Positions 4,354-37,337 of a DNA stretch of 64,000 nt are shown here, piece by piece. The position numbers and the translations under genes are program-made. The stretch is from IMG/VR virus record IMGVR_UViG_3300023174_005338, positions 1 through 64,000 of that record; one strand, written 5' to 3'. A model generated the notes under the pieces. It was not told the origin of the DNA, did no database searches, and was given only the letters and a program-made list of their open reading frames with translations. Position 1 is the first letter of the stretch. Every line of letters begins with the position of its first letter.

Positions 4354-4390
4354 ATTAGATCAGACAATTTATGGGCCTATAAATATCCAC

Positions 4391-5149
4391 ATGAATACTA
4401 TTGTGGTTGTATCAGGTGGGTTTGATCCCATACACTCTGGACACATAAAACTAATCAAAGAAGCACGAACTCTAGGCGATTATCTAATTGTGGGCATCAA
4501 CAGTGACGAATGGTTGGCCCGCAAAAAAGGCCGTGCATTCATGCCCTGGCAAGAGCGCCTGTGTGTGCTAAACAACCTGTCCATGGTAGACGAGGTTTAC
4601 ACCTTTGACGACGACGACGGCACTGCTTGTCATCTTTTACAACAGGTCCGCGCACACTATCCTGATGCACGCATTGTATTTGCCAACGGTGGTGATCGTA
4701 CTGCAAAAAATATTCCAGAAATGACAGTGCCTGACATAGAATTTGTGTTTGGCGTGGGCGGGTCGGACAAGTCCAATTCCAGTTCGTGGATACTTGAAGA
4801 GTGGCGAGCACCTAGAACACATCGTGTCTGGGGGTCCTACCGTGTGTTGTATGAAGCAGGCGCCGGAGTCAAGGTCAAAGAACTCACGGTAGAGCCTGGC
4901 CAACGACTCAGCATGCAACGCCATAAGTCGCGTGCTGAGCATTGGTTTGTGACCGAAGGTCAGGCCACAGTTTACACTATCAACAGGAAAAGCGACGCTG
5001 AACTCATGGGAGAATTTACCAAACATCAACACATACACATTGATCGTGAAGAATGGCATCAACTGTGCAACGAAACTGATCAACCTCTGCGGGTGGTAGA
5101 GATACAATATGGCGTGAATTGTGTAGAAGAAGACATAGAACGACTATGA
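4391..5149 (+). CDS. Cytidylyltransferase-like (HIGH) domain fused to a cupin (type II mannose-6-phosphate isomerase-like) domain
   Basis: SGGFDPIHSGH, GINSD, FANGGDR; C-terminal WGSY, LSMQRH..RAEHW, EIQYG..EEDIER. Start placed at ATG 4391 after TAAATA. Confidence 0.85.
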   Translation: MNTIVVVSGGFDPIHSGHIKLIKEARTLGDYLIVGINSDEWLARKKGRAFMPWQERLCVLNNLSMVDEVYTFDDDDGTACHLLQQVRAHYPDARIVFANGGDRTAKNIPEMTVPDIEFVFGVGGSDKSNSSSWILEEWRAPRTHRVWGSYRVLYEAGAGVKVKELTVEPGQRLSMQRHKSRAEHWFVTEGQATVYTINRKSDAELMGEFTKHQHIHIDREEWHQLCNETDQPLRVVEIQYGVNCVEEDIERL

Positions 5150-12406: not shown

Positions 12407-13273
12407 ATGATCTTGACCATTGATCTCAGAGATTTGTCACTAAAATTTCGGGTATTGAAAACGCCCATAGCCCAATTATGGATTGAACGCATGAATCAGA
12501 GACATTCGTGGCCCATGGATGATCCCAAAAGATTTTACGGATTTAATACCCAAGAACAAGATGAACGAATTGCCTTGGCAAAGATACAGGAATGCATACA
12601 AGGAATTAATGCCTGGCAGCCGTTGATTACTAGATCGTTGTCTACAGTTTACGATCAAGATACATTAAACTATCTACACAACGTTTTTGAACAGTGGCAC
12701 GGTTTGTTAGATCAACATCCGATGCATCCAGAATATGGTCTTATACCTTCGGAAGTAAGACAACATTTGGCCAATTTAAATGTTGATGTTCACAGGTGCG
12801 AAAGTGCAGCACGTGGCAATCGCGCTAGATTTGTTTGCACTTGGTTTGGCATGCCCAAGACCAAAACGTTGCCGGTAGAAGTCATGCACAAATATGGAAC
12901 CTTAAATCCCAAGTTTGGTAGCGTGTGTTTGAACTATGCTGAGGTCGGCAAAACTCTGGAGGACCTCACACAAGATCGTGATAACTACATCAGTAACGAT
13001 GCGTTTTTACCGTTCAACCACTATTCAGCAGACTTCAATGTTCGCATGCACGAGGAAACTGCGGATTGTGTTGCTGACAAATTGGTCAGGATGCAGGCAT
13101 ACTACAACAAACACAGAGAGTTTTTCTTTGATCAAGGCTTTACCACATTCCAGGATCCTAGACTGTTGCCTTTGCGTTTTCCAGTGGCCGAACTCGTTGA
13201 AACTCAACCTAGAGATCAGTTAATAGAAACGATTAAGCAACATCAATACATCACACAAGTTACCCTACAATGA
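12407..13273 (+). CDS. Hypothetical protein, paralog of 1013..1834
   Basis: LNYLHNVFE, LNVDVHRCE, LNYAEVGKTLEDL, HYS. Confidence 0.7.
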   Translation: MILTIDLRDLSLKFRVLKTPIAQLWIERMNQRHSWPMDDPKRFYGFNTQEQDERIALAKIQECIQGINAWQPLITRSLSTVYDQDTLNYLHNVFEQWHGLLDQHPMHPEYGLIPSEVRQHLANLNVDVHRCESAARGNRARFVCTWFGMPKTKTLPVEVMHKYGTLNPKFGSVCLNYAEVGKTLEDLTQDRDNYISNDAFLPFNHYSADFNVRMHEETADCVADKLVRMQAYYNKHREFFFDQGFTTFQDPRLLPLRFPVAELVETQPRDQLIETIKQHQYITQVTLQ

Positions 13274-14730
13274 GAACAGCCACAATCGTAATCCGAGACG
13301 AAGTAAACATCAAGATCGAAGGACTTGAACTTGATGCTCGCCGTAGTTTAGTAAATGCTTTCAAATATGATGTTCCTGGTGCTAGATACTTACCTGCGGT
13401 CAGACTAGGACGTTGGGACGGCAAAGTCAGCTATTTCCAATTAGGTGGTAGCACCTATGTAAACTTGTTACCTGAGATTATTCCTATCCTGGAAAAGTTT
13501 AACTATGACGTTGAGCTAGATGATCAACGTGATTACTCTACCACGTTTACTTTTGAACAAGTAACCGAACAAACGTTCAGTCATATTGAGTGGGGCAAAG
13601 GGCATCCCCTAGAAGGTCAGCCAATGGAACTGCGTGATTACCAAGTTGACATCATCAACAATTTTCTTGAGAACCCACAGTGTATCCAGGAGATTGCCAC
13701 AGGTGCCGGCAAGACAGTTATTACAGCCGCATTATCAAATGCCGTGGCCCCCTATGGTCGAACCATTGTTATTGTTCCTAACAAAAGTCTTGTAACGCAG
13801 ACAGAAAAAGATTACATCAACATGCAACAGGATGTGGGGGTTTACTTTGGTGATAGAAAGGAGTGGGGTCGTCAACATACTATTTGCACTTGGCAAAGTT
13901 TGAATGTGCTGTTAAAGAATACAAAAAATAGTGTAGGCGATGTTACTATTGGTGAGTTCCTTGAGGATGTGGTGTGTGTGATTGTGGACGAAGTACACAT
14001 GGCCAAGGCCGACGCACTCAAGAGCCTGCTCACAGGTGTAATGAGTCGCATACCTTTGCGTTGGGGACTCACAGGAACCATACCTAAAGAACTCTTTGAG
14101 TCGCAGGCATTGAAGTGTAGTCTTGGTCCGGTAATAGGTCGACTCAGCGCCAGTGAACTACAAAGCCAAGGTGTGCTGGCACAATGTCATGTAAACATTG
14201 TTCAACTGGTTGATCATGCAGAGTTTACCAACTATCAAAGCGAACTAAAGTTCTTGCTAGAAGAACCAGATAGGTTAGATACTATTGCCAACTTGATCCG
14301 GCAGGTCAATGAGACCGGTAACACACTGGTCCTGGTTGATCGAATTGCAGCCGGACAGGGCATTATAGAACGCCTGGGTGACAATGCAGTCATGGTAAGT
14401 GGCGCAACCAAAGCCAAGGACAGACAAGATGAATATGATGAAGTGGCTGATGCAACAGGCAAGATCATCGTGGCCACGTATGGCGTGGCTGCGGTGGGTA
14501 TCAATATACCTAGGATTTTCAATCTGGTTCTTGTGGAACCTGGCAAGAGTTTTGTGCGAGTGATACAAAGCATAGGACGTGGTATTCGCAAGGCCGAAGA
14601 CAAAGACCATGTGCAGATTTGGGACGTTACATCAACCTGTAGATTTGCCAAACGGCACTTGACCAAACGCAAACAGTTCTACCGAGAAGCCAACTATCCT
14701 TTCACACAAGAGAAACTAGAATGGAAATAA
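13270..14730 (+). CDS. uvsW: UvsW superfamily 2 DNA helicase
   Basis: WDGK, LRDYQ, ATGAGKT, DEVH, GLTGT, QSIGRGIR. Confidence 0.93.
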   Translation: MRTATIVIRDEVNIKIEGLELDARRSLVNAFKYDVPGARYLPAVRLGRWDGKVSYFQLGGSTYVNLLPEIIPILEKFNYDVELDDQRDYSTTFTFEQVTEQTFSHIEWGKGHPLEGQPMELRDYQVDIINNFLENPQCIQEIATGAGKTVITAALSNAVAPYGRTIVIVPNKSLVTQTEKDYINMQQDVGVYFGDRKEWGRQHTICTWQSLNVLLKNTKNSVGDVTIGEFLEDVVCVIVDEVHMAKADALKSLLTGVMSRIPLRWGLTGTIPKELFESQALKCSLGPVIGRLSASELQSQGVLAQCHVNIVQLVDHAEFTNYQSELKFLLEEPDRLDTIANLIRQVNETGNTLVLVDRIAAGQGIIERLGDNAVMVSGATKAKDRQDEYDEVADATGKIIVATYGVAAVGINIPRIFNLVLVEPGKSFVRVIQSIGRGIRKAEDKDHVQIWDVTSTCRFAKRHLTKRKQFYREANYPFTQEKLEWK

Positions 14731-16799: not shown

Positions 16800-17475
16800 T
16801 TCCAAATATATCTGCCAGTATTGCAAGAAAGACTTTATCAAGGAGTCCAGTCTTGCGGTGCATTCATGCGAACCGCGTCGTCGTCGCATGGAAAAAGACG
16901 AAGCAGGTGTACGTTTAGGATTCCACGCATACCTAAGGTTTTATGAATTGACACAAGGTTCGGCAAAGTTAAAAACATTTGAAGACTTTGCCGATAGTCC
17001 GTACTACAAGGCCTTTGTAAAGTTTGGTAGGTACTGTGTGGACATCCGGGCTATAAATCCAGCACGGTTTGTTGAGTGGGTGTTGAAACAAAACAAGAAG
17101 ATTGATCACTGGGCCAAAGACACAGTGTATACAGAATATCTCATTGACTATCTGCGTGTGGAAAATGTCAACGATGCTCTGGCTCGGGCCATGGAGTTTG
17201 GCATAGACTGGTCAGAACAAAGTCAGCACCCAGCCGAAGATTGTCTGCGCTATGGCAACACCAATGCCATGGTCTATGCTGTAACTGCTGGCCGTGTCAG
17301 TCCTTGGATAGTGTATAACTGTGAATCAGGTCAGAAGTTTTTGAGTGAACTTGATGCTACACAAGTAGCCATGGTGTGGCCCTACATTGATAGTGAAGTG
17401 TGGATGAAAAAATTCTCAGACTATGTGGCTGATCAGGAATACGTCAAAGAGATGCTACAGAAAGCAGGTTGGTAA
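16792..17475 (+). CDS. Hypothetical protein with N-terminal zinc finger
   Basis: CQYC-x12-HSC. Confidence 0.7.
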   Translation: MSDSKYICQYCKKDFIKESSLAVHSCEPRRRRMEKDEAGVRLGFHAYLRFYELTQGSAKLKTFEDFADSPYYKAFVKFGRYCVDIRAINPARFVEWVLKQNKKIDHWAKDTVYTEYLIDYLRVENVNDALARAMEFGIDWSEQSQHPAEDCLRYGNTNAMVYAVTAGRVSPWIVYNCESGQKFLSELDATQVAMVWPYIDSEVWMKKFSDYVADQEYVKEMLQKAGW

Positions 17476-18053
17476 TGAGCGCAGACATTGATATTGACCT
17501 AGCCCATAGAGAACAATTATTAAAATTGATCCAAGCAACGCCAGCACGACAACTGTATCAAGGACAAGTGCGTAGACACAACAGCGGAGTATATCCAACT
17601 GACATGCCGTATGATCCTGTCAATGCCTGCGCGGCCATTGACTATGAAACCGCTGAACAGTTGGGATACTTCAAGATAGATCTACTCAACATGACAGTGT
17701 ATCAACTGATACAGGATCAAGCACATTATGATCGCATGCTGGTTGCTGATCCGCCATGGTCCAAATTGTGGACCGACAGTGAATGGGCCCAGCAACTAGT
17801 GCATGTGGGAAACTATACAGAATTGTTGAAAACCATGCGTCCTGACAGCATACCCAGGATGGCAGCATTTATCAGTATTATTCGTCCAGGCAAAACACAC
17901 TTGCAAAACCAACCCTGGGACCGGGTTTTTGCTTCAGTATGGGATGGCGACGACAGCCGCGGTTTTGTGTTCAAACAAAGCCATGCTGTCAGTTACGCAG
18001 CCTTGGTGGCCCTGCACATGAATCTACTCAACTCGTCGTACCAGAGTAATTGA
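17475..18053 (+). CDS. Miniature DnaE (Pol III alpha, family C)-like protein
   Basis: DIDID, HNSGV, GYFKIDLL, IIRPG, FKQSHAVSY match DnaE palm/finger motifs in only ~192 aa. Confidence 0.75.
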   Translation: MSADIDIDLAHREQLLKLIQATPARQLYQGQVRRHNSGVYPTDMPYDPVNACAAIDYETAEQLGYFKIDLLNMTVYQLIQDQAHYDRMLVADPPWSKLWTDSEWAQQLVHVGNYTELLKTMRPDSIPRMAAFISIIRPGKTHLQNQPWDRVFASVWDGDDSRGFVFKQSHAVSYAALVALHMNLLNSSYQSN

Positions 18054-18462: not shown

Positions 18463-19608
18463 ATGTATTCAACCCAAGTCTATATCTATCAGCAGATCAC
18501 CAGAGTCCTGCTCATGGACACAGGTGCGGGCGAAACTTTTATCTATAGGTATGATCCTGTGTACGCAAAACAACTGACAATTAACAAAGGTGTAGACAAT
18601 GTGCTGTTGTTTGAATTTATCAATCAACAAGAAAAGCCTGTAAACATCACGGGTAGCACGTTCCTGTTCCGGGTGATCAGCACCGCCGGCGACGAATTAT
18701 TGCTGGAAAAACCCATGGTCACGTTGAATGCGGCCACCGGGCGTGCCAAGGTCACTTTGACCAGTGCTGAACTGCTGGAGGTCCTAGCACAGCCGGCCAA
18801 CTACAGCATACAACGCAGCAGTGGCAATCTGGTAGAAGCAGTGTTTACCAATGCACAGGCCGGCGCCCGTGCTCCTGCGAATATCGTAGACAGCATACTG
18901 CCACAGTATGTTCCAAGTGCACCACTCACAATACCCACTATCAAGCTCAGTGCTCAGGGCAGCCCAGATGGTATTGGGTGGACTCAATGGCCCAGCAATC
19001 CATATTATTCTGGAAATCCCAATGGTGGAAATTATTACAACAGTTTTTTAAACACTGAATATTTTAGTAGTTTTATTGAACCCACAAAAGGCATTACCAC
19101 AGTGCAGATGACCTTGGTAGGGTACACCGGCACAATCAAGGCACAGGCCGCAGAAAACTATCAAAGCATATTTTACAATGTCACAGAGAGTACTACCTAC
19201 TACGACGAAACCAGAACCATATACATGAACATTGTAGGATGGCATCCTATAATTAGATTGTGTTTCAACAACAGCATTTTTGCTGTGCCAGATCAACCTG
19301 GCACTCCGGCCATAGCCACAGCCATTACAGAAAACGGTGTGGTCACTGCCATCAACGTGGTCAACGGTGGAAATGGTTATCTGGCACCACCCAAGATCAA
19401 CATCATAGGCAGCGGTTCTGGAGCCACAGCCGAAGCCACCATCTCGGGTGGTGTGGTCACAGGTATCACAGTGACCAATGGCGGCAGTGGTTATTGGTAT
19501 CTACCCAATGCAGGTTCGACCAGCGTGGTCAGTCCTGCTCCTCCGTCGACATCCAGTGCTGCTGTGGTAATCAGCACCGGTTATGTGGTTGATCTATTGT
19601 ATAGATAA
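18463..19608 (+). CDS. Putative virion structural (baseplate/tail) protein
   Basis: Late TAAATA motif 6 nt upstream; repeated V.NGG.GY and ATA.A.I..GVVT.I motifs. Confidence 0.6.
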   Translation: MYSTQVYIYQQITRVLLMDTGAGETFIYRYDPVYAKQLTINKGVDNVLLFEFINQQEKPVNITGSTFLFRVISTAGDELLLEKPMVTLNAATGRAKVTLTSAELLEVLAQPANYSIQRSSGNLVEAVFTNAQAGARAPANIVDSILPQYVPSAPLTIPTIKLSAQGSPDGIGWTQWPSNPYYSGNPNGGNYYNSFLNTEYFSSFIEPTKGITTVQMTLVGYTGTIKAQAAENYQSIFYNVTESTTYYDETRTIYMNIVGWHPIIRLCFNNSIFAVPDQPGTPAIATAITENGVVTAINVVNGGNGYLAPPKINIIGSGSGATAEATISGGVVTGITVTNGGSGYWYLPNAGSTSVVSPAPPSTSSAAVVISTGYVVDLLYR

Positions 19609-19655: not shown

Positions 19656-20660
19656 ATGATCGATGTGATTTCTTACTTGCCCGCACGACGCAAGCCCAGT
19701 GCTTCGGGTTGGATCAGTTTCAATGCACCCTGCTGTATACACAACAGTGAAAGTGCGGATCGTCGCAGTAGGGGTGGTATCAAAACTTCAGATGCAGGGT
19801 GGAGTTATCACTGTTTCAACTGTGGCTACACTGCTAGTTTTATCTTAGGTCGCAATCTCAGTTTCAAGGCACGCAAGCTGATGTCATGGTTGGGGGTACC
19901 AGCAGAAGAAATAGAACGCATCAACTTAGAAAGTCTACGCCATCGTAGCATGGAAGGTCTACTTTCTGATCGTCAAAGGTTGAGCAATACCTTGCAAGGC
20001 ATAGAGTTTGAAGAACGTGACCTGCCACCAGCTGCAGAACTGGTCACTACAAAACATAATCTGCACTGGAATTACTTGCGTGGCCGTGCCGTACCAGAAA
20101 GCTATCCTGTGATGACTGTGTTAGAAAATGACAGTGTGCATTGGACACGTCCACAGGTCATAGTGCCATTTACCTATGACGATCGCGTGGTAGGTTACAG
20201 TAGCCGCATGCTGGACAATCGTCAGCCTCGGTACATACATGACACACAGCCTGGCTATGTGTTTGGCACAGACTTACAAGGTGCTGACTGGCGTTATGCC
20301 ATAGTGGTTGAAGGTGTGTTTGATGCACTTGGCATTGGAGGCTTGGCTGTGTTGCATGCCGAGATCAATGACGCACAGGTCAGACTCATACGCAGTCTAG
20401 ATCGTGAAGTCATAGTGGTACCTGATCAAGACGCGGCAGGCATGAAGTTAGTAGACCGTGCAGTAGAACTAGGCTGGAGTGTAAGCATGCCTGCATGGCC
20501 CGCGGATGTCAAAGATGTCAATGATGCTGTGATTCGTTGGGGAAAGGTAGCAACTTTGATAACTATCATGCAGTCCAGAGAAACCAGTAAAATTAAAATA
20601 GAACTAAGGAAGAAAGCACTCTTAAAAAGACTTAAACAATCAAAGATTGTAACTTCTTAA
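19656..20660 (+). CDS. gp61: DNA primase (gp61-like)
   Basis: Zn finger (PCC...HCFNC), TOPRIM VEGVFDA, PDQD, KDVND. Confidence 0.88.
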
Positions 20661-21389: not shown

Positions 21390-22787
21390 ATGATTACAGA
21401 TTATAATTTGGCAGTGCAACGTCTCTTTTTAGAGATGATGATTTCTGACGCAGAATTGTTCGTCAGAGTTCAAAATATTTACAATCCCGAAAACTTTGAT
21501 CGCAGTCTGCGACCGGTTGCAGAATTTTTGAAACAACATTGTAATGAATATAAAACACTACCTACGCCAGAACAAATAAATGCCGCAACAGGAATCAAAC
21601 TTGAGCCAATACTTGATCTAAATGAAGGTCACTGTGATTGGGCGTTAAACACATTCGAAGGATTTACTCGACGTCAAGAACTAGAGCGGGCAATCTTGAA
21701 GTCAGCAGACCTGCTGGAAAAAGGTGAGTATGATCCTGTGGAGAAGTTGATCAAGGATGCGGTACAGATCAGCTTGACCAAGGACATGGGCACAGACTAC
21801 TGGTCTGATCCCAAAGCTCGTATCAACAAATACTTTAATAGCGGTGGACAAGTTTCAACAGGTTGGCCACAGATGGACAAGATCTTGTATGGTGGATTCA
21901 GCAGAGGCGAACTCAACATTTTTGCAGGTGGATCAGGTTCTGGTAAATCCTTGGTCATGATGAACATTGCTTTGAGCTGGTTGCAGGCTGGCTTGTCGGG
22001 GGTGTATATCAGTTTGGAACTCAGTGAAGAACTGTGTGCCCTGAGAACTGATGCCATGTTGGCCGGAATGAGCACCAAAGAAATACGCAAGGACATTGAT
22101 CAGACCGAGCTCAAGGTCAAACTTGTGAGCAAGAAAGCCGGACAATATCGTATCAAGGCCCTGCCGGCGCAAAGCAACATCAATGACATACGAAGCTACA
22201 TCAAAGAAGTACAAGTGCAAACAGGATTGAAAGTGGACTTTGTCATGTGTGATTACTTGGACTTGTTGATGCCTGTGAGCGCCAAGGTCAGTCCCAATGA
22301 TCTGTTTGTCAAAGACAAGTATGTTTCAGAAGAACTGCGTAACTTGGCCAAAGAGCTCAATGTGTTGTTTGTGACAGCCAGCCAGTTGAATAGATCGGCC
22401 GTGGAAGAAATTGAGTTCGACCACAGTCATATTTCGGGCGGTATCTCAAAGATCAACACAGCAGACAATGTGTTTGGCATCTTTACCAGCCGAGCCATGC
22501 GTGAACGTGGCAAGTATCAGATACAGTGTATGAAAAGTCGTAGTAGCACAGGTGTAGGACAAAAGATTGACTTGGACTACAACATTGAAACCATGCGTAT
22601 CACTGATCCAGGTGAAGAAGCAGGGCCAGTTAACTCTTTCAAGAAACCTGATATTTTAACCAGCATCAAAACACAAAGTCGTATGACCACACCTGCAGAA
22701 GAAGAAATTGTAGAATCTGGCAAAATAACCGCTGATGTTCAGAGCGCAAAACTAAAACAGTTGTTGGGAAAGATAAAGACCACATGA
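21390..22787 (+). CDS. gp41: gp41/DnaB-like replicative helicase
   Basis: STGW, GGSGSGKS, SLELSE, DYLDL, TASQLNR, KSR. Confidence 0.93.
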   Translation: MITDYNLAVQRLFLEMMISDAELFVRVQNIYNPENFDRSLRPVAEFLKQHCNEYKTLPTPEQINAATGIKLEPILDLNEGHCDWALNTFEGFTRRQELERAILKSADLLEKGEYDPVEKLIKDAVQISLTKDMGTDYWSDPKARINKYFNSGGQVSTGWPQMDKILYGGFSRGELNIFAGGSGSGKSLVMMNIALSWLQAGLSGVYISLELSEELCALRTDAMLAGMSTKEIRKDIDQTELKVKLVSKKAGQYRIKALPAQSNINDIRSYIKEVQVQTGLKVDFVMCDYLDLLMPVSAKVSPNDLFVKDKYVSEELRNLAKELNVLFVTASQLNRSAVEEIEFDHSHISGGISKINTADNVFGIFTSRAMRERGKYQIQCMKSRSSTGVGQKIDLDYNIETMRITDPGEEAGPVNSFKKPDILTSIKTQSRMTTPAEEEIVESGKITADVQSAKLKQLLGKIKTT

Positions 22788-23296
22788 ACCAACAAGCCTT
22801 GGATACTGCCATTCAACTCAGACCGGATTTATGGTCTATCAAAGAAATCTTGTTTGAGGATGAATTAAATTATCTGTTGTCTACCATTGAAAATGAAACA
22901 GATTGGATCAAAATTGATGGACAACAAACTCTCAACAGAGAACAAGTCGCTTGGAAACCGGATGGAATATGTGATTGGCTCTGGTGTAAGTTATCTGAAT
23001 TAGATTTTTCAAGACTTGGTTTAAAATTTCGCACTGCGATGATCTGGAAAGATCAAGCCAGGTATAAAATCGATAATCATTTTGACAACGATCAAGTCAC
23101 GGCTGCCATGCAAATTTATCTTAGCGAAGACCGTGCCGATCTAGGAACTTGGTTTGAAAATTCCGTGGAAATAGCTTTCAAACAAAATACCGGTTATATC
23201 ATGCATAATAGAAACAGATTGATCCATGGCATGAAGAAATCTGTGCCTGACAATTACTCACGCCTGAGTTTTTATGCTCTATTTGATCGCCTTTGA
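22784..23296 (+). CDS. 2OG-Fe(II) oxygenase-like protein
   Basis: HFD (HxD), MQIYL, GT.F, NTGY, distal HG, R.S. Confidence 0.65.
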   Translation: MNQQALDTAIQLRPDLWSIKEILFEDELNYLLSTIENETDWIKIDGQQTLNREQVAWKPDGICDWLWCKLSELDFSRLGLKFRTAMIWKDQARYKIDNHFDNDQVTAAMQIYLSEDRADLGTWFENSVEIAFKQNTGYIMHNRNRLIHGMKKSVPDNYSRLSFYALFDRL

Positions 23297-23320
23297 TCAC
23301 GACAAAAACAAAGGTTAAAA

Positions 23321-24331
23321 ATGATTGCGTATAAAGACATCAGAGATGTTCATTTAGAAATCTCTAGCCTTTGCAACGCCAGTTGTCCTTGGTGTCCTAG
23401 AACATTCTGGGGGTATCCCTACAACGGCGGGTATCCTGAAACCAATCTCAGTTTAACACAAGCACGACATATATTTCGCCCTGAGTTTTTACAACAGTTG
23501 ACCAGTATTCGTATCAACGGCAATTTTGGTGACATCGTTATGAATCCAGAAGGGCCGGCAATAGTAGACTATTTTTTCTCTCACAATCCAGACCTTGAAG
23601 TAACTATCAGTACCAATGGCGGTGCTAGAAACAAAGATTTTTGGACTAGACTGGCACATACACCAGCTACCGTGCAATTTTGTTTAGATGGGCTCAAGGA
23701 CACACATCATCTTTACCGACAAAACACACAATGGTCCACGGTTATTAAGAATGCCAAAGAATTTATCAGTGCAGGCGGATACGCTGTTTGGAGTATGATT
23801 CCATTTGATCACAATAGACATCAAATTGATGCCTGCAAAAAAATAAGCCAAGACCTAGGATTCAAAGAGTTTGAATTAAAAAATGATGGACGTGATACTG
23901 CGCCGGTGTTTAATCAGCATGGTCATTTAGTTCATGTCATGGGCAACTACACAGGTGAACTCAACTTTGAGACTTTGTTGCACAAGAAAAAAACAGACAC
24001 TGTTTTACTACAAGACATCACAACTAATCGAGTTCCTGCCGCATCTATCAGCTGTGAAACAAAAAATCTTAAATCCATTTATGTCTCAGCTGCTGGTGAT
24101 GTTAGCCCATGTTGCTACACAGGTTTTTATCCTAAGACATATGGTGCAGGACAATATCATCAAGCGGCCAATGCACAGTTGATTCCACTAATAGTTAAAA
24201 ACAATGCTTTAGAATACTCCTTGCAAGAATGCGTAGAATGGTTTAAATCTGTTGAAAAATCGTGGAAAATACCAAACTATGAGCAAGGACGTTTGATTAT
24301 TTGTGATGACAACTGTGGCCAAAACCAATAA
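23321..24331 (+). CDS. Radical SAM protein with C-terminal twitch/SPASM-like Cys cluster
   Basis: CNASCPWC (CxxxCxxC), STNG, LDG, SC...G.VSPCC, C..NC. Confidence 0.88.
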   Translation: MIAYKDIRDVHLEISSLCNASCPWCPRTFWGYPYNGGYPETNLSLTQARHIFRPEFLQQLTSIRINGNFGDIVMNPEGPAIVDYFFSHNPDLEVTISTNGGARNKDFWTRLAHTPATVQFCLDGLKDTHHLYRQNTQWSTVIKNAKEFISAGGYAVWSMIPFDHNRHQIDACKKISQDLGFKEFELKNDGRDTAPVFNQHGHLVHVMGNYTGELNFETLLHKKKTDTVLLQDITTNRVPAASISCETKNLKSIYVSAAGDVSPCCYTGFYPKTYGAGQYHQAANAQLIPLIVKNNALEYSLQECVEWFKSVEKSWKIPNYEQGRLIICDDNCGQNQ

Positions 24332-24355: not shown

Positions 24356-24604
24356 ATGCAGAAAAAAACAAAAAGTCTATTAGAAGAATTAGATGCCATG
24401 TACATTCAGCGCGATCAGCGCCATGTCATAGAAAACCGTGCCAGCAACGTGATTGCCAGTGCCATACGTTTGATGGAGCAGATTGATGATTCTTATCCTG
24501 CTGAACAGGCAGAAAATCTCAAACGCAAATTGCTCAATGCTATAAATCAGCGTGATCCCAACAAGTTTACTCGAACAGTGAGACGCACCGATGCAAATTC
24601 ATGA
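24356..24604 (+). CDS. Conserved late hypothetical protein
   Basis: 82 aa, upstream TAAATA (~24329). Confidence 0.7.
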   Translation: MQKKTKSLLEELDAMYIQRDQRHVIENRASNVIASAIRLMEQIDDSYPAEQAENLKRKLLNAINQRDPNKFTRTVRRTDANS

Positions 24605-25313
24605 AATAACACAATGTAAGTTAGACGAAGGCTTGGGCAACTTGTTGGGCAAAGCTGCCGGCGGAATCGCCAAAGGAGCCAATTGGCTGGCACAGAAAAC
24701 ATCTCCTGTGGGCGATTTCAAACGTGCCTACACTGGATCAATGGCGTCGCAACAAACGGCCATGCTAGGGAAAAAAGTTGCTGACATCTGGGCTCGCTAT
24801 GATCAGCAACTACGAGCTGCCACACCTGATCCAACCCAGTATGCTGATCTATATCCCAAATCACTGGCAGCGTTTGTACAAAAAAATCTCCTGGGCGGTC
24901 AGTCTTTGTCCTATGCTACCAACAAACAACAAATCAACCAGCTTATCAGTGACATTACCAACAACAGAGACAATCCACAAAAGGTGGCACAAGGCATGGC
25001 CAAACTGGTGCAACAGGCCGCGGTCAGTCAACAAGATGTGAATCAGACACAAGGTCTGGCCAAGGTGGTCAGCGTGCAACCGGCTGTGATACAATACAGG
25101 AATGTCAACTATGCCATTGACAACAATGGTCAATGGGCCAATCAAACCACAGGTCGTGTGCCCGATGAAAGTTTCCAAGCATTCCTAGATCAGGAACTGA
25201 TCAAAGCTGGCGGATCAGCACCAACCGGATCTACTGTTGCGTCTGCTCCGTCGACATCGCCGCTGGGTCAGAATGTCAGACGTTCGACACGTAAACGTCC
25301 AGGTACAGTTTGA
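24591..25313 (+). CDS. Putative internal virion protein
   Basis: N-terminal MQIHEI...LDE/G leader resembling prohead-protease-processed proteins; Ala/Gln-rich. Confidence 0.5.
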   Translation: MQIHEITQCKLDEGLGNLLGKAAGGIAKGANWLAQKTSPVGDFKRAYTGSMASQQTAMLGKKVADIWARYDQQLRAATPDPTQYADLYPKSLAAFVQKNLLGGQSLSYATNKQQINQLISDITNNRDNPQKVAQGMAKLVQQAAVSQQDVNQTQGLAKVVSVQPAVIQYRNVNYAIDNNGQWANQTTGRVPDESFQAFLDQELIKAGGSAPTGSTVASAPSTSPLGQNVRRSTRKRPGTV

Positions 25314-27202
25314 TCATGCATTTGCTCGAAGGTGGCAACGTATTCAAAGATGCCGATGGTCGTGCCCTGACCCAACGCATAAATCAGACCGATGTCAAGC
25401 CAACTCTGGCCTGGTTAGAAGAATTGGTGCCAGGTCTGGATCTACAAAACAACACCTTGGGCAGCACTGGTATCCGAGACACCAGTGGTGATCTTGACAT
25501 TGCCGTAGACAGCAAGCAGGTTACCAAAGAACAGATGGTAGCCCAACTCACACGTTGGGCACAGAGCCACGGGTTCAAGCCCGAAGAATGGGTGCGCAAG
25601 TCAGGCACCGCGGTGCACTTCAAGACACCCATCAATGGTCGCCCTGATTCAGGATTTGTGCAAACCGACTTTATGTTTTTACAGAATGTGCCTTGGTCAA
25701 AGTTTGTGCTGGGCGCCATGCCCACAGATAGCCGATACAAAGGCCGTGAGCGCAACGTGCTGATCAACAGCATAGCTAAAAGCAAGGGCTACAAGTTGAA
25801 TCAAATCGCAGGCATACAACGCAGAGATGACCCCACAAATAAGGTAATAACCGACGATCCAGATCAAGTTGCCAAGATTCTTCTTAACAAAACAGCCACA
25901 CGGCAAGATTTGGCTAGTGTAGAAACCATATTACAAGCTCTCAGCACAGATCCTGAACGTGAAGCCAAGTTGGCCGACTTCCGTGAACACATGAAGCGCG
26001 AAGGCCTGCCATTTATGGAAAGCGAAACACCTGCAGTAACCGGATACACAGAAGTAAATTTCCTGGCCAAGTTGCGTGATCGTATTGTTAAACAAGGCAT
26101 GCAACCTTTGATTGAGCAGACTTTGATGGAAGCCGAAGCTCGTATACCACACATCGAAGATCTGGTGTTTGATCGTGGCACACGTGGCATCGAAGAAGCC
26201 ATGGCCATCATACGTGCAGCCGCCGAGGATACTAGAAAAACAACCACAGTCAAATGGGATGGCAAACCTGCCATTATCTGGGGTAGAGATGAACAGGGCG
26301 ATTTTGTACTCACAGACAAGAGTGGCTTTGGTGCCAAAGGATATCAAGGCCGTGCCACCAGCATGGCGCAACTGGCCGGTATCATGAGTCAGCGTAGCGG
26401 TGAACGCGGTGAGCTGATTGGCATATATCAAAAACTATGGCCCATGCTGGAAGCAGCTACACCTGAAAAGTTCCGAGGATACGTGCAGGGCGACCTGCTG
26501 TATACCGAAACTCCGCCCGAAGTGTCGGGCAACTATGAATTCAAACCCAACTTTGTGGAATATCGTATTCCGGTTTCCAGCAAGTTGGGACAGGCCATTG
26601 GAGCCAGTGAAGTGGGCATAGCCGTGCATACCCGATACAAAACTGCCGACGCCACAGCCGAACCCATAAGAAGTGCAAATCTAGATCCAGTGCCAGGCCT
26701 GCTGATCATTGAGCCCACGGTCAAAGACATCCGGAATGTCACACCCAACAAAAAACTCGTAGATCAACTGCGTGCAGTCATCAGCTCGCACGGTGCTGAC
26801 ATCAACAGCTTGTTCAATCCCGTCGAGCTCAGAGCCGCACAGCTCAGCGACTTGCCGGCGCTGTGCAAACGCTACATCAACAGCAGAATCACCACTGACT
26901 ATGAAAATCTCCTGCCGGACTTTGGTGCTTGGTTGCAGAAAAACGTAACTCCAAGAAAATACAACAACATAGTGGAATACCTGCAGAGCCCTAGAAGCAA
27001 CATGTCGGGCATCACAGCCGCATTCACAGCATTCTTGCTGTTGCATGAAATCAAGATGGACATGCTGGCGCAGCTGGATCGCCAACAGCCCGGACAAGAA
27101 GGCTGGGTCTTGGCCACCGATGCCGGTCGTGCCAAGTTGGTCAATCGCTTTGGGTTCAGTGCCGGAAATAGGATCTTAAACAACCCCAATTTGGTCACCT
27201 AA
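25310..27202 (+). CDS. Pol-beta-type nucleotidyltransferase fused to a KxDG ligase-like domain
   Basis: N: LGSTG..SGDLDIAVD..QTDF; C: HIEDL, TVKWDG, QGDLL, EGWVL, KLVNR; start 25310 (TTG) or 25316. Confidence 0.6.
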   Translation: MIMHLLEGGNVFKDADGRALTQRINQTDVKPTLAWLEELVPGLDLQNNTLGSTGIRDTSGDLDIAVDSKQVTKEQMVAQLTRWAQSHGFKPEEWVRKSGTAVHFKTPINGRPDSGFVQTDFMFLQNVPWSKFVLGAMPTDSRYKGRERNVLINSIAKSKGYKLNQIAGIQRRDDPTNKVITDDPDQVAKILLNKTATRQDLASVETILQALSTDPEREAKLADFREHMKREGLPFMESETPAVTGYTEVNFLAKLRDRIVKQGMQPLIEQTLMEAEARIPHIEDLVFDRGTRGIEEAMAIIRAAAEDTRKTTTVKWDGKPAIIWGRDEQGDFVLTDKSGFGAKGYQGRATSMAQLAGIMSQRSGERGELIGIYQKLWPMLEAATPEKFRGYVQGDLLYTETPPEVSGNYEFKPNFVEYRIPVSSKLGQAIGASEVGIAVHTRYKTADATAEPIRSANLDPVPGLLIIEPTVKDIRNVTPNKKLVDQLRAVISSHGADINSLFNPVELRAAQLSDLPALCKRYINSRITTDYENLLPDFGAWLQKNVTPRKYNNIVEYLQSPRSNMSGITAAFTAFLLLHEIKMDMLAQLDRQQPGQEGWVLATDAGRAKLVNRFGFSAGNRILNNPNLVT

Positions 27203-30419: not shown

Positions 30420-30803
30420 ATGGCCTATTCTGAAAAAGTAATCGATCATTATGAAAACCCACGCAATGTGGGCAAGATGGACGTGGGCGATGTCAATGTA
30501 GGTACCGGCATGGTTGGTGCGCCGGCCTGCGGTGATGTAATGAAACTACAAATTCGAGTAGAAGATGGAATCATACAAGATGCGAAATTTAAGACTTACG
30601 GTTGCGGCTCTGCTATTGCGTCGAGTTCGTTGCTCACGGAATGGGTCAAGGGTAAAACTCTGGAGCAAGCAGGAGCGATTAAGAACTCACAGATTGCAGA
30701 AGAGCTCGCATTACCGCCGGTCAAGATCCATTGCTCGATCCTGGCTGAGGACGCGATCAAAGCTGCTATCGAAGATTACAAGAGAAAACATCTAGATGAT
30801 TGA
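30420..30803 (+). CDS. iscU: Fe-S cluster scaffold IscU
   Basis: MAYSEKVIDHYENPRNVG, APACGD, YGCGSAIASS, LPPVKIHCS. Confidence 0.97.
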   Translation: MAYSEKVIDHYENPRNVGKMDVGDVNVGTGMVGAPACGDVMKLQIRVEDGIIQDAKFKTYGCGSAIASSSLLTEWVKGKTLEQAGAIKNSQIAEELALPPVKIHCSILAEDAIKAAIEDYKRKHLDD

Positions 30804-31116
30804 AGTAACTGATGCAGCCAGTAAGAAAATCCAACAGAATCTTGCTCGTAGAGGCAACGGTATTGGCATACGCATAGGAACTAGAACCACGGGTTGTTCG
30901 GGTCTGGCCTATGTGTTAGAATATGTAGACCAACCAGCTGACACTGATCAGGTATTTGAGGCTGACAAATTTAAAATTGTAGTAGATCCCAAGAGTTTGC
31001 CTATTGTGGACGGCATCACGGTGGATTATGTGCGTCAAGGACTCAACGAAGGCTTTGAATTTATTAACCAAAAAGAACGAGACCGCTGTGGGTGCGGGGA
31101 AAGTTTCCGAGTCTAA
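30796..31116 (+). CDS. iscA: Fe-S assembly A-type carrier IscA
   Basis: GCSGLAY and CGCGESF. Confidence 0.95.
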   Translation: MIEVTDAASKKIQQNLARRGNGIGIRIGTRTTGCSGLAYVLEYVDQPADTDQVFEADKFKIVVDPKSLPIVDGITVDYVRQGLNEGFEFINQKERDRCGCGESFRV

Positions 31117-31117
31117 T

Positions 31118-31828
31118 TTGTACAATCCACGATTTGATTATCAACCCTTGAACCGGGTCACCGAAGACGGCCGCAGGCTTTATGATACTCCAGGCGGCAA
31201 GTTGCCCAGTGTCACTACAATCCTAGAAAAAACCAAGCCCGAAGAAAAGAAACAAGCACTCCAAGAGTGGCGCAATCGTGTGGGGCATGCACAGGCACAG
31301 GCCATAACCACAGAAGCTGCCAATCGTGGCACTAGAATGCACACCTATCTTGAGCACTATGTAAAAACAGGCGAGTTGAAAGAACAAGGATCAAATCCGT
31401 TTGGCTGGGCCAGCCATGCCATGGCACAAACTGTGATTGAAGATGGGCTCAAAAATGTCACGGAGTTTTGGGGAGTAGAAATACCCTTGTATTTTCCCAA
31501 ACTGTATGCTGGAACCAGCGATGGCGCAGGAATACATCTCCGTGAGGAAAGTATTCTAGACTACAAGCAAACAAATAAACCCAAGCGTAGAGAATGGATT
31601 GAAGATTACTTTCTACAACTAGCAGCCTATGCTCTTGCACACAACGAAGTATATGGTACAAATATTCGCAGGGGTGTAGTGCTGATGTGCGTGAAACCTC
31701 CAGTGGACACCCAGGGGCGTCCCACAGCCCGCCCAGAATATCAGGAATTTGTGTTGGAAACTGCGGATTTTGACCATTGGGCTGACGCATGGTGGCGCAG
31801 ACTTGAGCAATACTACCTGCTGACCTAA
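31118..31828 (+). CDS. PD-(D/E)XK exonuclease
   Basis: LPSVTTIL, RGT.MH, E, AGTSD, DYKQ, QLAAYA; start placed at TTG 31118. Confidence 0.85.
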   Translation: MYNPRFDYQPLNRVTEDGRRLYDTPGGKLPSVTTILEKTKPEEKKQALQEWRNRVGHAQAQAITTEAANRGTRMHTYLEHYVKTGELKEQGSNPFGWASHAMAQTVIEDGLKNVTEFWGVEIPLYFPKLYAGTSDGAGIHLREESILDYKQTNKPKRREWIEDYFLQLAAYALAHNEVYGTNIRRGVVLMCVKPPVDTQGRPTARPEYQEFVLETADFDHWADAWWRRLEQYYLLT

Positions 31829-33898: not shown

Positions 33899-36226
33899 AT
33901 GACGCAGATCACAGTTGTAAAAAGAAGCGGACGCAAAGAGCCACTACAGATTGACAAGTGGCAGGCACAGGTTGCCAAAGTCTGTCAAGGCATCGCTGAC
34001 GTAAGTCAGAGCATGATAGAAATCAAAGCTCAGTTGCATTTTTATGATGGTATTACCACCAAAGAGATTGATGGTATCACCTTGCGTGCCATTGTGGACT
34101 TGATTGATGTAGAAGCAAATCCTGATGTGGGCCACACCAACTATCAATTTGTGGCTGGCAAGCAAAGACTCAGCATGTTGAGAAAAGATGTGTATGGTAG
34201 CTATACTCCTCCGCATTTGTATGACATAGTAAAAAAGAATGTAGCCACTGGTCTTTACACCGCGGATTTGTTGGAATGGTACACTGAAGAAGACTGGAAT
34301 CGCATGAACGACATGATCGATCATGAAAAAGACGAACAGTATAGTTACGCAGCCATTGAACAGTTGATTGAAAAATATTTGGTACGCAATCGTGCCACCA
34401 AGGAAATCTATGAGACGCCGCAGGTCAGATACATGGTGGCAGCGGCCACGGTGTTTCACGAAGAAGAACCCAACACTGCAAGGATGCGTTACATCAAAGA
34501 ATATTATAATTGTGCCAGTGATGGCCTGTTCACTCTGGCTACACCTGTGTTGGCTGGTCTAGGTACTCCCACCAAACAATTTAGTTCCTGTGTTCTTATT
34601 CGCGCCGACGACGATCTGGACAGTATATTTGCTTCAGGAGAAATGATGGCCAAGTATGCGGCCAAGCGTGCCGGCATTGGCCTGGAGGTTGGTCGTTTGC
34701 GTCCACTAGGTGCCGCCATTCGCGGTGGTGAAGTCATGCACACTGGCATGATTCCATTCTTGAAAAAATGGTTTGGAGATTTGCGTAGTTGTAGTCAAGG
34801 AGGTATTCGTAATGCAAGTGCTACTGTGTTCTATCCTATCTGGCATTATCAATTTGATGATCTCATCGTGCTCAAAAACAATCAAGGCACTGAAGAAACA
34901 CGAGTCCGACACATGGATTACGGAGTGGTGTTATCATCGTTCTTTTGGCGGCGTTTTAAGAACAAGGAATCGATTACGTTCTTTGATCCTAACGAAGTGC
35001 CAGACCTGTATGAAGCATTTTACAAAGACACAGCGAGATTTGAAGAGTTGTATGTCAAATATGAAAAAAGAAAAGACCTTCGCAAGAAGGTAATCGCGGC
35101 CGAAGAAGTATTCAAAGGTGGTATATTAAAGGAGAGAACTGACACAGGTCGTATCTACTTGGTGTTTATTGACAATGTTATAAACCAGGGACCTTTTGAT
35201 CCTGAGTATCATGCCATCTATCAAAGTAACCTCTGCTGTGAAATCTTGTTGCCCACCAAGCCATTCAAACGACTTGACGACGATGCTGGGCGTATTGCCT
35301 TGTGCACCTTGGGCAGCATCAACTGGGGTGCGTTCCGCAATCCTGAAGACATGCGCAGGGCCTGCCGTATACTGCAACGCAGTCTATGTAACATACTTGA
35401 CTATCAAGACTATTTAAGCATCCAGAGCATGCTGAGCAACCAAGAGATCCAACCCTTGGGCATTGGTATCACTAACCTAGCATACTGGCACGCAAAACGC
35501 GGCCTGCTGTACGGTGAGAAAGATGCCTTGCAAGAAGTCAAGTCGTGGATGGAACATCAAGCCTACTACTTGACAGAAGCCACAGTGGAGTTGGCCAAAG
35601 AACGTGGACCATGCAGTCACAGCGGTCTTACACGTTATGGTCAAGGCGAGTTTCCATGGGAGCGTCGCGCCCGGGCGGTCAACGAATTGGCCAACTTCCG
35701 GCCAGAACTTGATTGGGAATCACTGCGTGAGAAGATGAAGATCCATGGTGTGCGCAATGCCACACTCATGGCAGTGGCTCCGGTTGAGTCGTCATCGGTT
35801 GTGATCAACTCAACCAATGGCATCGAAATGCCCATGAGTTTGATCACGGTCAAAGAATCCAAAGCAGGAAGTTTGATCCAAGTGGCTCCCGAATACAACA
35901 AGTTGAAGAACCGATATCAACTCATGTGGGAACAACGAGACTGTGCAAATTACTTGAAGACAGCAGCTGTGATTGCTGCCTACGTGGATCAAAGTATCAG
36001 CACAAACACATTCTACAATCCTGCACACTTTGCGGATCGCAAGGTGCCAACTACCTTGATCGCCACCAACCTCATGCAGGCACATCGTTGGGGACTGAAA
36101 ACATTCTACTACAGCCTGATCAACAAACAAGGATCAAAAGGTCAAGACGAAGCACCACAGGTCTTGCACACACAAGAACCCGACAGCGACCTCTTAGAGG
36201 AAGATTGTCTGGCCTGCAAATTATAA
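33899..36226 (+). CDS. nrdA: Class Ia ribonucleotide reductase alpha subunit
   Basis: ATP cone VVKRSG, FSSCV, SNLCCEI, LCTL, TFYY, C-terminal CLAC. Confidence 0.97.
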   Translation: MTQITVVKRSGRKEPLQIDKWQAQVAKVCQGIADVSQSMIEIKAQLHFYDGITTKEIDGITLRAIVDLIDVEANPDVGHTNYQFVAGKQRLSMLRKDVYGSYTPPHLYDIVKKNVATGLYTADLLEWYTEEDWNRMNDMIDHEKDEQYSYAAIEQLIEKYLVRNRATKEIYETPQVRYMVAAATVFHEEEPNTARMRYIKEYYNCASDGLFTLATPVLAGLGTPTKQFSSCVLIRADDDLDSIFASGEMMAKYAAKRAGIGLEVGRLRPLGAAIRGGEVMHTGMIPFLKKWFGDLRSCSQGGIRNASATVFYPIWHYQFDDLIVLKNNQGTEETRVRHMDYGVVLSSFFWRRFKNKESITFFDPNEVPDLYEAFYKDTARFEELYVKYEKRKDLRKKVIAAEEVFKGGILKERTDTGRIYLVFIDNVINQGPFDPEYHAIYQSNLCCEILLPTKPFKRLDDDAGRIALCTLGSINWGAFRNPEDMRRACRILQRSLCNILDYQDYLSIQSMLSNQEIQPLGIGITNLAYWHAKRGLLYGEKDALQEVKSWMEHQAYYLTEATVELAKERGPCSHSGLTRYGQGEFPWERRARAVNELANFRPELDWESLREKMKIHGVRNATLMAVAPVESSSVVINSTNGIEMPMSLITVKESKAGSLIQVAPEYNKLKNRYQLMWEQRDCANYLKTAAVIAAYVDQSISTNTFYNPAHFADRKVPTTLIATNLMQAHRWGLKTFYYSLINKQGSKGQDEAPQVLHTQEPDSDLLEEDCLACKL

Positions 36227-36236
36227 AGAGAACATC

Positions 36237-37337
36237 ATGAGCCAAGCACAATACAATTTACGCACACGAACAGATTACCTTAACCGCAAGATGTTTTTGG
36301 ATCCTGCAGGTCCGGTGACCATACAACGCTTTGAAGAAGTCAAATACAACAAAATTGTAAAGTTTGAACAAGAAGCCCGAGGATTCTTTTGGGTACCCGA
36401 AGAGATCAGTCTAACCAAAGATGCCGGAGACTTTAAAGAAGCCAGTGACACAGTGCGTCATATCTTTACCAGCAATCTGTTGCGTCAAACGGCCCTTGAT
36501 AGCCTGCAAGGGCGCGGCCCCACACAGGTATTCACGCCTGTGGTCAGCATTCCAGAACTAGAAGCACTGATGTACAACTGGGGATTCTTTGAAACCAACA
36601 TCCACAGCCGTAGTTACAGCCACATCATACGCAACATCTACAATGTGCCCAAGGAAGAGTTCAACAAGATCCATAACACCGCAGAAATTGTGGACATGGC
36701 ATCGACCATTGGACTTTATTACGATCGTCTACACATGATCAACTGCCGCAAAGAGTTGCAGGAAGAGTTCGATGAGTACGAACACATCCGGGCCATATGG
36801 CTGGCACTCAATGCCAGTTATGGTCTAGAGGCCTTTCGTTTTATGGTCAGCTTTGCCACCAGCTTGGCCATGGTTGAGAATCGAATATTCATCGGCAACG
36901 GCAATATTATACAACTGATCTTACAAGACGAGATCCTGCACAAGGACTGGACTGCTTGGATCATCAACCAAGTGGTCAAAGAAGACCCAAGATTTGCCCG
37001 AGCCAAACAGGAATGTGAAGCCGAAGTGTATGCCATGTATCAAGATGTGATCCGTGAAGAAAAAGCCTGGGCTGATTACCTGTTCAAGAAAGGGCCAGTG
37101 ATTGGCCTCAATGCCAACATTCTGCGTGATTTTGTGGACTATACCGCAGTTGCAGCACTCAAAGAAATTGGTGTCAAATATCAAGGTGTGGCTCCCAAGA
37201 CCACTCCTATACCTTGGTTCAACAAGCATGTGAACACTTCAAACAAACAAACAGCGTTGCAAGAAAATGAAAGCACCAACTATGTAATTGGAGCTATGAG
37301 TGACACCATTGACTACAACGCATTACCCAGCTTATAA
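36237..37337 (+). CDS. nrdB: Class Ia ribonucleotide reductase beta subunit
   Basis: FFWVPEE, LDSLQ, ETNIHSRSY, EAFRF, DEILH. Confidence 0.97.
   Translation: MSQAQYNLRTRTDYLNRKMFLDPAGPVTIQRFEEVKYNKIVKFEQEARGFFWVPEEISLTKDAGDFKEASDTVRHIFTSNLLRQTALDSLQGRGPTQVFTPVVSIPELEALMYNWGFFETNIHSRSYSHIIRNIYNVPKEEFNKIHNTAEIVDMASTIGLYYDRLHMINCRKELQEEFDEYEHIRAIWLALNASYGLEAFRFMVSFATSLAMVENRIFIGNGNIIQLILQDEILHKDWTAWIINQVVKEDPRFARAKQECEAEVYAMYQDVIREEKAWADYLFKKGPVIGLNANILRDFVDYTAVAALKEIGVKYQGVAPKTTPIPWFNKHVNTSNKQTALQENESTNYVIGAMSDTIDYNALPSL

Follow-up and report, generated by a model that had tools for sequence, protein, structure and literature searches.

A PolX-like module joined to a DUF6267 ligase-like module in a jumbo phage: a candidate enzyme for filling and sealing gaps in phage DNA

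What would a phage do with a polymerase-like and a ligase-like domain joined in one polypeptide? This question is raised by an uninterrupted plus-strand reading frame at positions 25310-27202 of the window, the term we use for the whole stretch of DNA analyzed here, namely the first 64 kb of the 337,119-bp jumbo-phage record IMGVR_UViG_3300023174_005338, which carries direct terminal repeats. The gene is currently annotated as hypothetical/DUF6267. The original prediction, made from the sequence alone, described its product as a nucleotidyltransferase followed by an RNA-ligase-like domain, and confident structural models and fold searches (Foldseek, run on each domain) bear out this two-enzyme architecture. 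The interpretation we favor, at a probability of about 0.5, is that the protein is a fill-and-seal enzyme for gaps or nicks in phage DNA and is tied to replication.

The proposed open frame is real, and its start can be refined. The upstream gene ends in a TGA stop at 25311-25313, the next ATG lies at 25316, and the identical protein is 628 aa long according to gene callers. The true start is therefore almost certainly 25316, giving a product that begins MHLLEGG, and an in-frame TTG at 25310, which overlaps the upstream stop, is an unlikely start. The complete coding sequence then spans 25316-27202 (+; 628 aa plus a TAA stop). A DNA-level search of the phage collection returned no close relative, HMMER searches against PDB sequences (single-sequence and profile, with the whole protein and with each domain) found nothing meaningful, NCBIfam gave no match, and the protein's PHROGs match is a family of unknown function. 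Pfam sees only the C-terminal half, as DUF6267 (PF19782, E = 4e-35), of which we found no mention in the literature searched. Conservation was assessed in alignments of 76 N-domain and 96 C-domain homologs, 30-74% identical, and each half was folded separately with its own alignment, yielding a mean predicted local distance difference test score (pLDDT) of 95 for the N model and 90 for the C model. The catalytic motifs described below are well beyond chance, being conserved or invariant across these homologs.

The N domain (aa 1-235, 25316-26020, +) is predicted to comprise a palm and thumb resembling those of family X polymerases (PolX), with a short helical tail. Its first two catalytic aspartates would lie in GSTGIRDTSGDLD (aa 49-61, 25460-25498, +), an hGS-x8-DhDh motif, and the third, D118, in QTDF (aa 116-119, 25661-25672, +). 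The Pol beta signature named in the original prediction is thus present, as is the third Asp in QTDF, but the spelling given for the former, GS..SGDLD, has to be corrected to the one above. D61 is invariant among the N-domain homologs, and G49, S57, G58, D59 and D118 are at least 90% conserved; in the model, D59 and D61 sit on a strand formed by residues 59-65 and D118 on one formed by residues 114-122. The model supports a Pol-beta-type fold with a DxD...D triad.

Fold comparisons point specifically to PolX. Against the PDB, the N model gave 118 Foldseek matches at E <= 1e-3, and the top matches were all Pol lambda, Pol beta, Leishmania Pol beta or Thermus PolX, at a probability of 1.0. Among Swiss-Prot models the first 14 matches were all PolX (template-modeling score, TMq, 0.38-0.48), with CCA-adding enzymes, CD-NTases and terminal uridylyltransferases ranking after them (about 0.27-0.31), and the nearest named ESM Atlas clusters outside the family were a bacterial PolX cluster and a PolX palm-and-thumb cluster (TM 0.53 and 0.59). 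At the level of Pfam profiles, the target matched neither the PolX models (PF14792 and PF14791) nor RlaP (PF10127); RlaP is likewise not among the 25 families listed for the 76 homologs, for which the sole recurrent match was a weak one to DNA_pol_B_palm, seen in 3/76 (best E = 0.0018). Behind the palm lies a thumb subdomain, corresponding to the Pfam DNA_pol_B_thumb region, and this is a mixed alpha/beta, PolX-type thumb, in contrast to the all-helical domain of RlaP. We found no counterpart of the 8-kDa domain (deoxyribose-phosphate (dRP) lyase/5′-phosphate binding) or of the helix-hairpin-helix fingers: nothing matches residues 1-138 of Pol beta, and the N domain begins about 10 residues ahead of the palm-equivalent region. 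Judged from the model, the N domain is most likely family-X-polymerase-like with a minimal layout of palm and thumb only. A PolX-like domain that includes a thumb shifts the likely substrate toward DNA gaps, with templated gap filling as the predicted function.

The C domain (aa 277-628, 26144-27199, +) corresponds to Pfam DUF6267 and is modeled as a ligase-type covalent nucleotidyltransferase. Its motif I, KWDG (aa 313-316, 26252-26263, +), contains K313, the predicted nucleotidyl-accepting lysine, and the K, D and G are invariant among the 96 sequences. This is followed by a motif III-like GDLLY (aa 392-396, 26489-26503, +; strand 151-159 of the model), in which G and D are at least 90% conserved, and by motif IIIa, FKPNFVEY, whose final Y is invariant. 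Motif IV, EGWV (aa 595-598), has an invariant E and G, and in the motif V-like KLVNRFGF (aa 607-614; the two motifs together span 27098-27157, +) the K is at least 90% conserved while the R four residues after it and the F are invariant; the classical second lysine of motif V is absent. Motifs I, III, IIIa, IV and V fall in order on the expected predicted strands, in agreement with the series KWDG, GD, EGWV and KLV originally proposed. DUF6267 also contains a conserved HxED motif N-terminal to motif I.

A helical insert (aa 479-590, about 110 residues; 26750-27085, +; helices 242-353 of the C model) that canonical ligases lack separates the motif IIIa region from motif IV; ligase alignments bypass it, and helical-bundle matches fall on it. 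The model has no OB domain with motif VI, the protein ending some 14-20 aa past motif V. All 50 top PDB matches of the C model are ATP-dependent DNA or RNA ligases, each of them weak (E = 0.02-0.4), and among AFDB clusters an 'RNA ligase domain-containing protein' aligned across the whole domain (E = 8e-6). Most of the nearest folds and named relatives are RNA ligases. Compared with Rnl5 (the nick-sealing RNA ligase of Naegleria gruberi, 5cot), T4 Rnl2 and REL1, the C domain is only 12-13% identical, and DUF6267 differs from all three in its insert, in the N-terminal HxED and in a motif V that reads K-L-V-x-R rather than K-x-K. PF01068, the ATP-dependent DNA ligase family, matches only a separate ligase gene of this genome, and hhalign found no significant match between the C-domain profile and that ligase. 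The models support a ligase-type covalent nucleotidyltransferase fold that is very divergent.

If both modules are active, one polypeptide would act as two enzymes in succession on a broken nucleic-acid strand. The N module would use two metal ions, bound by its DxD...D triad, to extend a 3′-OH at a gap or recessed end by one or a few nucleotides. In the C module, K313 of KWDG would become nucleotidylated, most likely with AMP from ATP, and the AMP would be passed to a 5′-phosphate before the nick is sealed, with the helical insert, which is specific to the family, probably taking the duplex-binding role that OB and DNA-binding domains have in canonical ligases. The substrates would be short gaps and nicks arising from phage DNA replication or repair. 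DNA is the most likely substrate because the N module resembles DNA-repair polymerases and, in several phage lineages, the gene directly follows those for primase and replicative helicase; we infer that both modules are catalytically active and that they act on DNA rather than RNA. ATP would be the default cofactor for a ligase fold, with room for NAD+ or another adenylyl donor, since cytidylyltransferase-like (HIGH-motif) domains recur with both modules and HxED precedes motif I. A complex prediction of the N against the C domain scored 0.00, which counts neither for nor against docking.

The distribution of the two modules indicates that they belong together. A HMMER scan of 1.84 billion representatives yielded 1,563 relatives (clusters at 50% identity), and more than 3,900 clusters at 90% identity gave full-length matches. 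Among the best 150 of the 1,563 relatives, the N-C fusion is found in 45 complete and 12 partial proteins and the reverse C-N fusion in 5 complete and 1 partial; the N domain stands alone in 29 complete and 2 partial proteins, and the C domain in 47 complete and 9 partial ones. Where stand-alone N genes were examined, a ligase-like gene adjoins each. On one metagenomic contig (L006) the N gene is followed 70 nt later by DUF6267, in Sinorhizobium phage Phosso the ligase-like gp446 precedes the N-domain protein gp447 (hhalign probability 99.8%), and the N-like gene of Agrobacterium phage Atu_ph07 comes after one of 324 aa that matches RNA_ligase below threshold, although hhalign of the C-domain profile with this 324-aa protein gave no significant match while aligning at KxDG. 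Because the modules are fused in both orders and adjacent when split, this is classic evidence that they form one functional unit. Phage PA5oct has its DUF6267-like protein in gp256, which hhalign matches at 85% probability across motifs IV-V and a BFVD Foldseek search at E = 1.2e-5; gp255 and gp257 were considered as homologs of either domain and rejected on comparison. The ESM Atlas also holds a PolX-like module fused to a PD-(D/E)XK nuclease domain, in a cluster labeled archaeal, and another in an 894-aa protein family with NTP_transf_2.

The gene sits in a replication and nucleotide-metabolism region of the genome. A helicase (13270-14730), a polymerase fragment (17469-18053), a DNA primase (19656-20660, +) and a DnaB-like helicase (21390-22787, +) lie upstream, and an exonuclease (31004-31828) and ribonucleotide reductase (33899-37337) follow. 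Between the DnaB-like helicase and the PolX/ligase gene is an 82-aa companion gene (phrog_11854; 24356-24604, +), and directly upstream is a 240-aa open reading frame (ORF; 24591-25313, +) whose stop ends 2 nt ahead of the target ATG. The order primase, DnaB helicase, ~82-aa gene, sometimes a 200-290-aa ORF, and PolX/ligase is found again in relatives that are 45% (L007) and 36% (L021-23) identical, as well as in three cultured jumbo phages, PA5oct, Phosso and Atu_ph07. The 240-aa ORF is conserved in position, with no detectable sequence similarity to its positional equivalents. In the T4-like cyanophage S-WAM1 and the pelagiphage HTVC008M, a stand-alone DUF6267 gene lies just downstream of UvsX and the gp41 primase-helicase; the genes flanking it were rejected as N-domain homologs. 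The sole non-replication context seen is that of one relative (P0143; L020 225-7588), a C-N fusion directly upstream of a T4-type large terminase fragment and a portal gene.

Several other observations concern the neighborhood. The 82-aa protein is helical and occurs also in metagenomic relatives, in PA5oct, Phosso and Atu_ph07, and in Vibrio and E. coli jumbo phages; it is labeled 'virion structural protein' in PA5oct-like records, but where it sits suggests a link to replication. Upstream of the 82-aa gene and after the helicase, the window holds a 170-aa ORF and a radical SAM/SPASM-like gene (22784-24331, +; phrog_21308, weak Pfam Radical_SAM and SPASM matches) that are not at that position in the relatives L007 and L021-23. 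NifU-like and Fe-S-biosynthesis genes a few kilobases downstream (30420-31116, +) form a second conserved synteny element near the locus, being found also in the 36%-identical relative (L021 11418-11738). Finally, the polymerase fragment and the primase are separated by an ORF of 381 aa (18463-19608, +) that matches many baseplate and virion-protein PHROGs over aa ~280-350, probably through a shared Ig-like or carbohydrate-binding repeat inside the replication module.

The genome also encodes a canonical ATP-dependent DNA ligase 17 kb downstream (44096-45460, +; PF01068 at 77 bits, phrog_114), so that the phage carries two ligase-fold proteins and the PolX/ligase protein cannot be its only DNA ligase. 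The jumbo phages that join DUF6267 to PolX have a canonical ligase too, of the ATP type here and in PA5oct and of the NAD type in Phosso. A search for base-excision-repair partners found no Nfo-type or Xth-type apurinic/apyrimidinic endonuclease.

The closest precedent for a fill-and-seal protein is PgVPolX of Phaeocystis globosa virus 16T, in which PolX is fused to an NAD+-dependent DNA ligase and for which gap filling and nick sealing have been shown biochemically (PMC5537341). Like the phage protein, it places a PolX module before a ligase module in one viral polypeptide. It differs in that its Pol beta core is complete, 8-kDa dRP-lyase domain included, and its ligase is a canonical one of the LigA type, whereas the phage protein has palm and thumb only and a ligase-like domain from the unrelated DUF6267 clade with its helical insert. 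PgVPolX comes from a giant virus of algae rather than a bacteriophage, and sequence similarity between the two was not detected. The Pol X of African swine fever virus (ASFV) dispenses with both the 8-kDa and fingers subdomains, the only known such exception (PMC5537341). It resembles the phage N domain as a minimal PolX and works with a viral ligase in short-gap repair; in contrast to the phage protein, its polymerase and ligase are separate proteins, and the virus is eukaryotic. ASFV Pol X is not among the listed top matches of our model, and an equivalent layout is suggested by the ranges over which Pol beta and Pol lambda align. PgVPolX is the most direct instance of this short-gap-repair logic, in which a PolX-like module that adds nucleotides is coupled to a ligase module; other known ones are bacterial LigD, ASFV Pol X and its ligase, and the pair of Pol beta and Lig3.

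Bacterial LigD, the polymerase-phosphoesterase-ligase of nonhomologous end joining (NHEJ), likewise combines a nucleotide-adding polymerase and an ATP-dependent ligase in one chain, for break repair. The LigD polymerase prefers ribonucleoside triphosphates, and its ligase prefers a 3′ ribonucleotide, which means that an RNA-ligase-like sealing module could serve DNA repair. LigD differs from the phage protein in its archaeo-eukaryotic primase-fold polymerase, its OB-bearing ligase and its partner Ku. A hybrid of this kind, in which DNA is patched with ribonucleotides and then sealed by an Rnl2-like reaction, is conceivable for the phage protein as well.

The strongest rival to DNA gap filling, and essentially the function guessed at in the original prediction, is RNA repair, which we consider possible but distinctly less probable. 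Here a host ribotoxin would have cut and trimmed a tRNA or another RNA; the N module would restore one or two ribonucleotides at its 3′ end, in the manner of RlaP, and the C module would reseal it, protecting phage translation. This idea stays live because jumbo phages are documented to pair a Pol-beta-type nucleotidyltransferase (NTase) with an RNA ligase: RlaP, which adds one or two nucleoside monophosphates to damaged RNA, is a known partner of RNA ligases in these phages (PMC7824862, PMC12776372). RlaP with Rnl1 or Rnl2 matches the present protein in combining a Pol-beta-superfamily NTase with an ATP-dependent ligase fold in phages of the same size class, and in the logic of restoring nucleotides before ligation (PMC7824862, PMC12776372). 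Several features of the protein and its genome fit as well, including the mostly RNA-ligase affinities of a C domain without an OB domain, the separate DNA ligase already present in the genome, and a few relatives with HAD or 2H phosphoesterase domains. It likewise fits that no Rnl2-type RNA ligase was found in the genome; a search for Rnl1 also gave no match, but the Rnl1 control matched nowhere either, which makes that result uninformative.

Other evidence argues against RNA as the substrate. The N domain is far closer to PolX, with its palm and thumb, than to RNA-specific NTases, and RlaP is not among the families listed for the 76 sequences, DNA_pol_B_palm being the one recurrent, weak match. 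The phage protein differs from the RlaP/Rnl pairs in its PolX-like module with a thumb, its DUF6267 ligase and its replication context. No polynucleotide kinase exceeded threshold in the genome, and the 64-kb window contains zero tRNA genes. The conserved neighbors are a primase and a helicase, with no RNA-repair genes, and in the cyanophage and pelagiphage the gene falls within the gp41/UvsX replication-recombination cluster.

Accessory domains in a minority of relatives raise another alternative, that the two NTases act on small molecules or proteins together with the cytidylyltransferase-like enzymes that recur with them, as in making or recycling a nucleotide-derived cofactor or signal or in protein AMPylation. 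CTP_transf_like domains are fused to the N and/or C modules in 8/38 large relatives, in S-PM2-type cyanophage proteins, with a 591-aa fusion in S-PM2, and in Atlas clusters, a gene annotated as 'cytidyltransferase' directly follows DUF6267 in S-WAM1, and NT5C-like nucleotidase and amidoligase domains occur in some relatives. The cytidylyltransferase-like partner gave only weak PPAT/NMNAT-type matches, over the N-terminal motif, and these do not assign it to a subfamily. We regard a substrate other than a polynucleotide as improbable: each fold aligns across its whole domain with enzymes that act on polynucleotides, and this extends to the PolX thumb, the part in contact with the nascent base pair. 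The ligase motifs are all conserved, the context is replication, and the accessory domains are confined to a minority of relatives and absent from the target. The genome separately contains three cytidylyltransferase-like genes (4307-5149, 138314-138493 and 220202-220477), the first of which (+, within the window) is fused to a mannose-6-phosphate-isomerase/cupin domain.

The original prediction further held that the protein is a packaged polyprotein, matured into two enzymes and injected with the DNA. It would then enter the prohead and be cut after Glu at L/I-x-E sites by the phage's T4 gp21-type protease, a proposal that could be combined with either an RNA or a DNA substrate. All four L/M-x-E sites on which it was built exist: LLE/G at aa 3-5, FME/S at 233-235, LIE/Q at 265-267 and LME/A at 270-272. 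The last three were assigned to the interdomain linker (aa 236-276, 26021-26143, +), which also bears a helix, FLAKLRDRIV, and is modeled at low confidence (pLDDT 46-65 over C-model residues 1-40). Two of the positions are indeed conserved, the L-x-E before GG in 69/70 sequences and the L-x-E ahead of the C domain in 57/75. A prohead protease of the gp21 type is in fact present in the genome (Peptidase_S77, 90.6 bits; 289925-290365, +, outside the window) and shows that head maturation in this phage is T4-like. In PA5oct, homologs of the neighboring genes, and gp257-259 next to gp256, are annotated as virion proteins detected by mass spectrometry (MS), and the C-N fusion beside terminase and portal genes would also suit packaging. 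Many stand-alone N or C homologs (P0219, P0160, P0256, P0234, P0235, P0226 and others) carry a short leader of 10-25 aa with the form M-[R/K]-h-x-[E/D]-[F/L]...h-x-E-[G/A], which is missing from the target and which we take to resemble the T4 capsid-targeting sequence.

These sites give cleavage no real support, however. The protein contains 9 [L/I/M]-x-E tripeptides against 6.9 expected from its composition, which is no enrichment, and the other two of the four proposed sites are unconserved, FME/S being kept in only 15/54 sequences and LME/A in 1/11. The two conserved L-x-E lie inside invariant domain-start motifs, h-x-E-G-G-N-x-F-K and L-x-E-x-(A)RIxHxEDL; in the target, the former reads L-x-E-G-G-N-V-F (aa 3-10, 25322-25345, +), and its E5, G6, G7 and F10 are at least 90% conserved. 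Such motifs are present whether a domain is N-terminal, behind a leader, internal or stand-alone, and because they occur in single-domain proteins, where there is nothing to separate, their sequence pattern points to a function in structure or catalysis and not to a junction that is cut. Cleavage at LLE/G would moreover strip only 5 residues from the target. The gene belongs to the replication module rather than the head module and is separated from the protease gene by about 72 kb as measured across the genome ends, and PA5oct gp256 has no MS note in GenBank, the PA5oct study itself counting 'virion-unrelated enzymes' among its 93 MS hits. A packaged and injected polyprotein is thus unsupported and the least probable of the explanations considered.

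Reading the protein as a DNA fill-and-seal enzyme bears on a gap in the cyanophage literature. According to reviews, cyanomyoviruses have so far yielded no gp30 DNA ligase, rnlA or pseT, and distant homologs that escaped detection are one possibility (PMC2984593, PMC1079782). Neither HTVC008M nor S-WAM1 contains a PF01068 or PF01653 ligase, and the DUF6267 proteins of both keep HxED, KWDG, GDLLY, EG and KLV intact and reach 99.8-99.9% probability against the family profile. Situated beside gp41, with these motifs preserved and no recognizable ligase elsewhere in the two genomes, DUF6267 is therefore a concrete candidate for the missing ligase. A broader proposal, in which DUF6267 is a new ligase clade that includes the 'missing' gp30-type ligase, and in which its jumbo-phage fusion with possibly the first phage PolX is a replisome-linked gap-fill-and-seal enzyme for Okazaki fragment or nick maturation, is one that we put forward tentatively.

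Part of this picture is already known, namely a viral PolX-ligase fusion in PgVPolX and, in jumbo phages, NTase-ligase pairs formed by RlaP and Rnl. What appears to be new is a minimal PolX-like module in bacteriophages, the assignment of DUF6267 to the ligase fold as a clade distinguished by its insert, and a widespread PolX-like/DUF6267 fusion adjoining replisome genes. A 2022 review of phage DNA polymerases lists ASFV alone for family X among viruses (PMC8775771), and as far as our literature search showed, the N module would be the first family-X-type polymerase reported in bacteriophages. If these interpretations are true, very abundant phage proteins now labeled 'hypothetical' or DUF6267 become a new ligase clade, and the long-standing cyanophage ligase gap becomes directly testable. 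A compact polymerase-ligase in which a helical insert replaces the OB domain may also be of interest for enzymology and as a source of molecular-biology tools.

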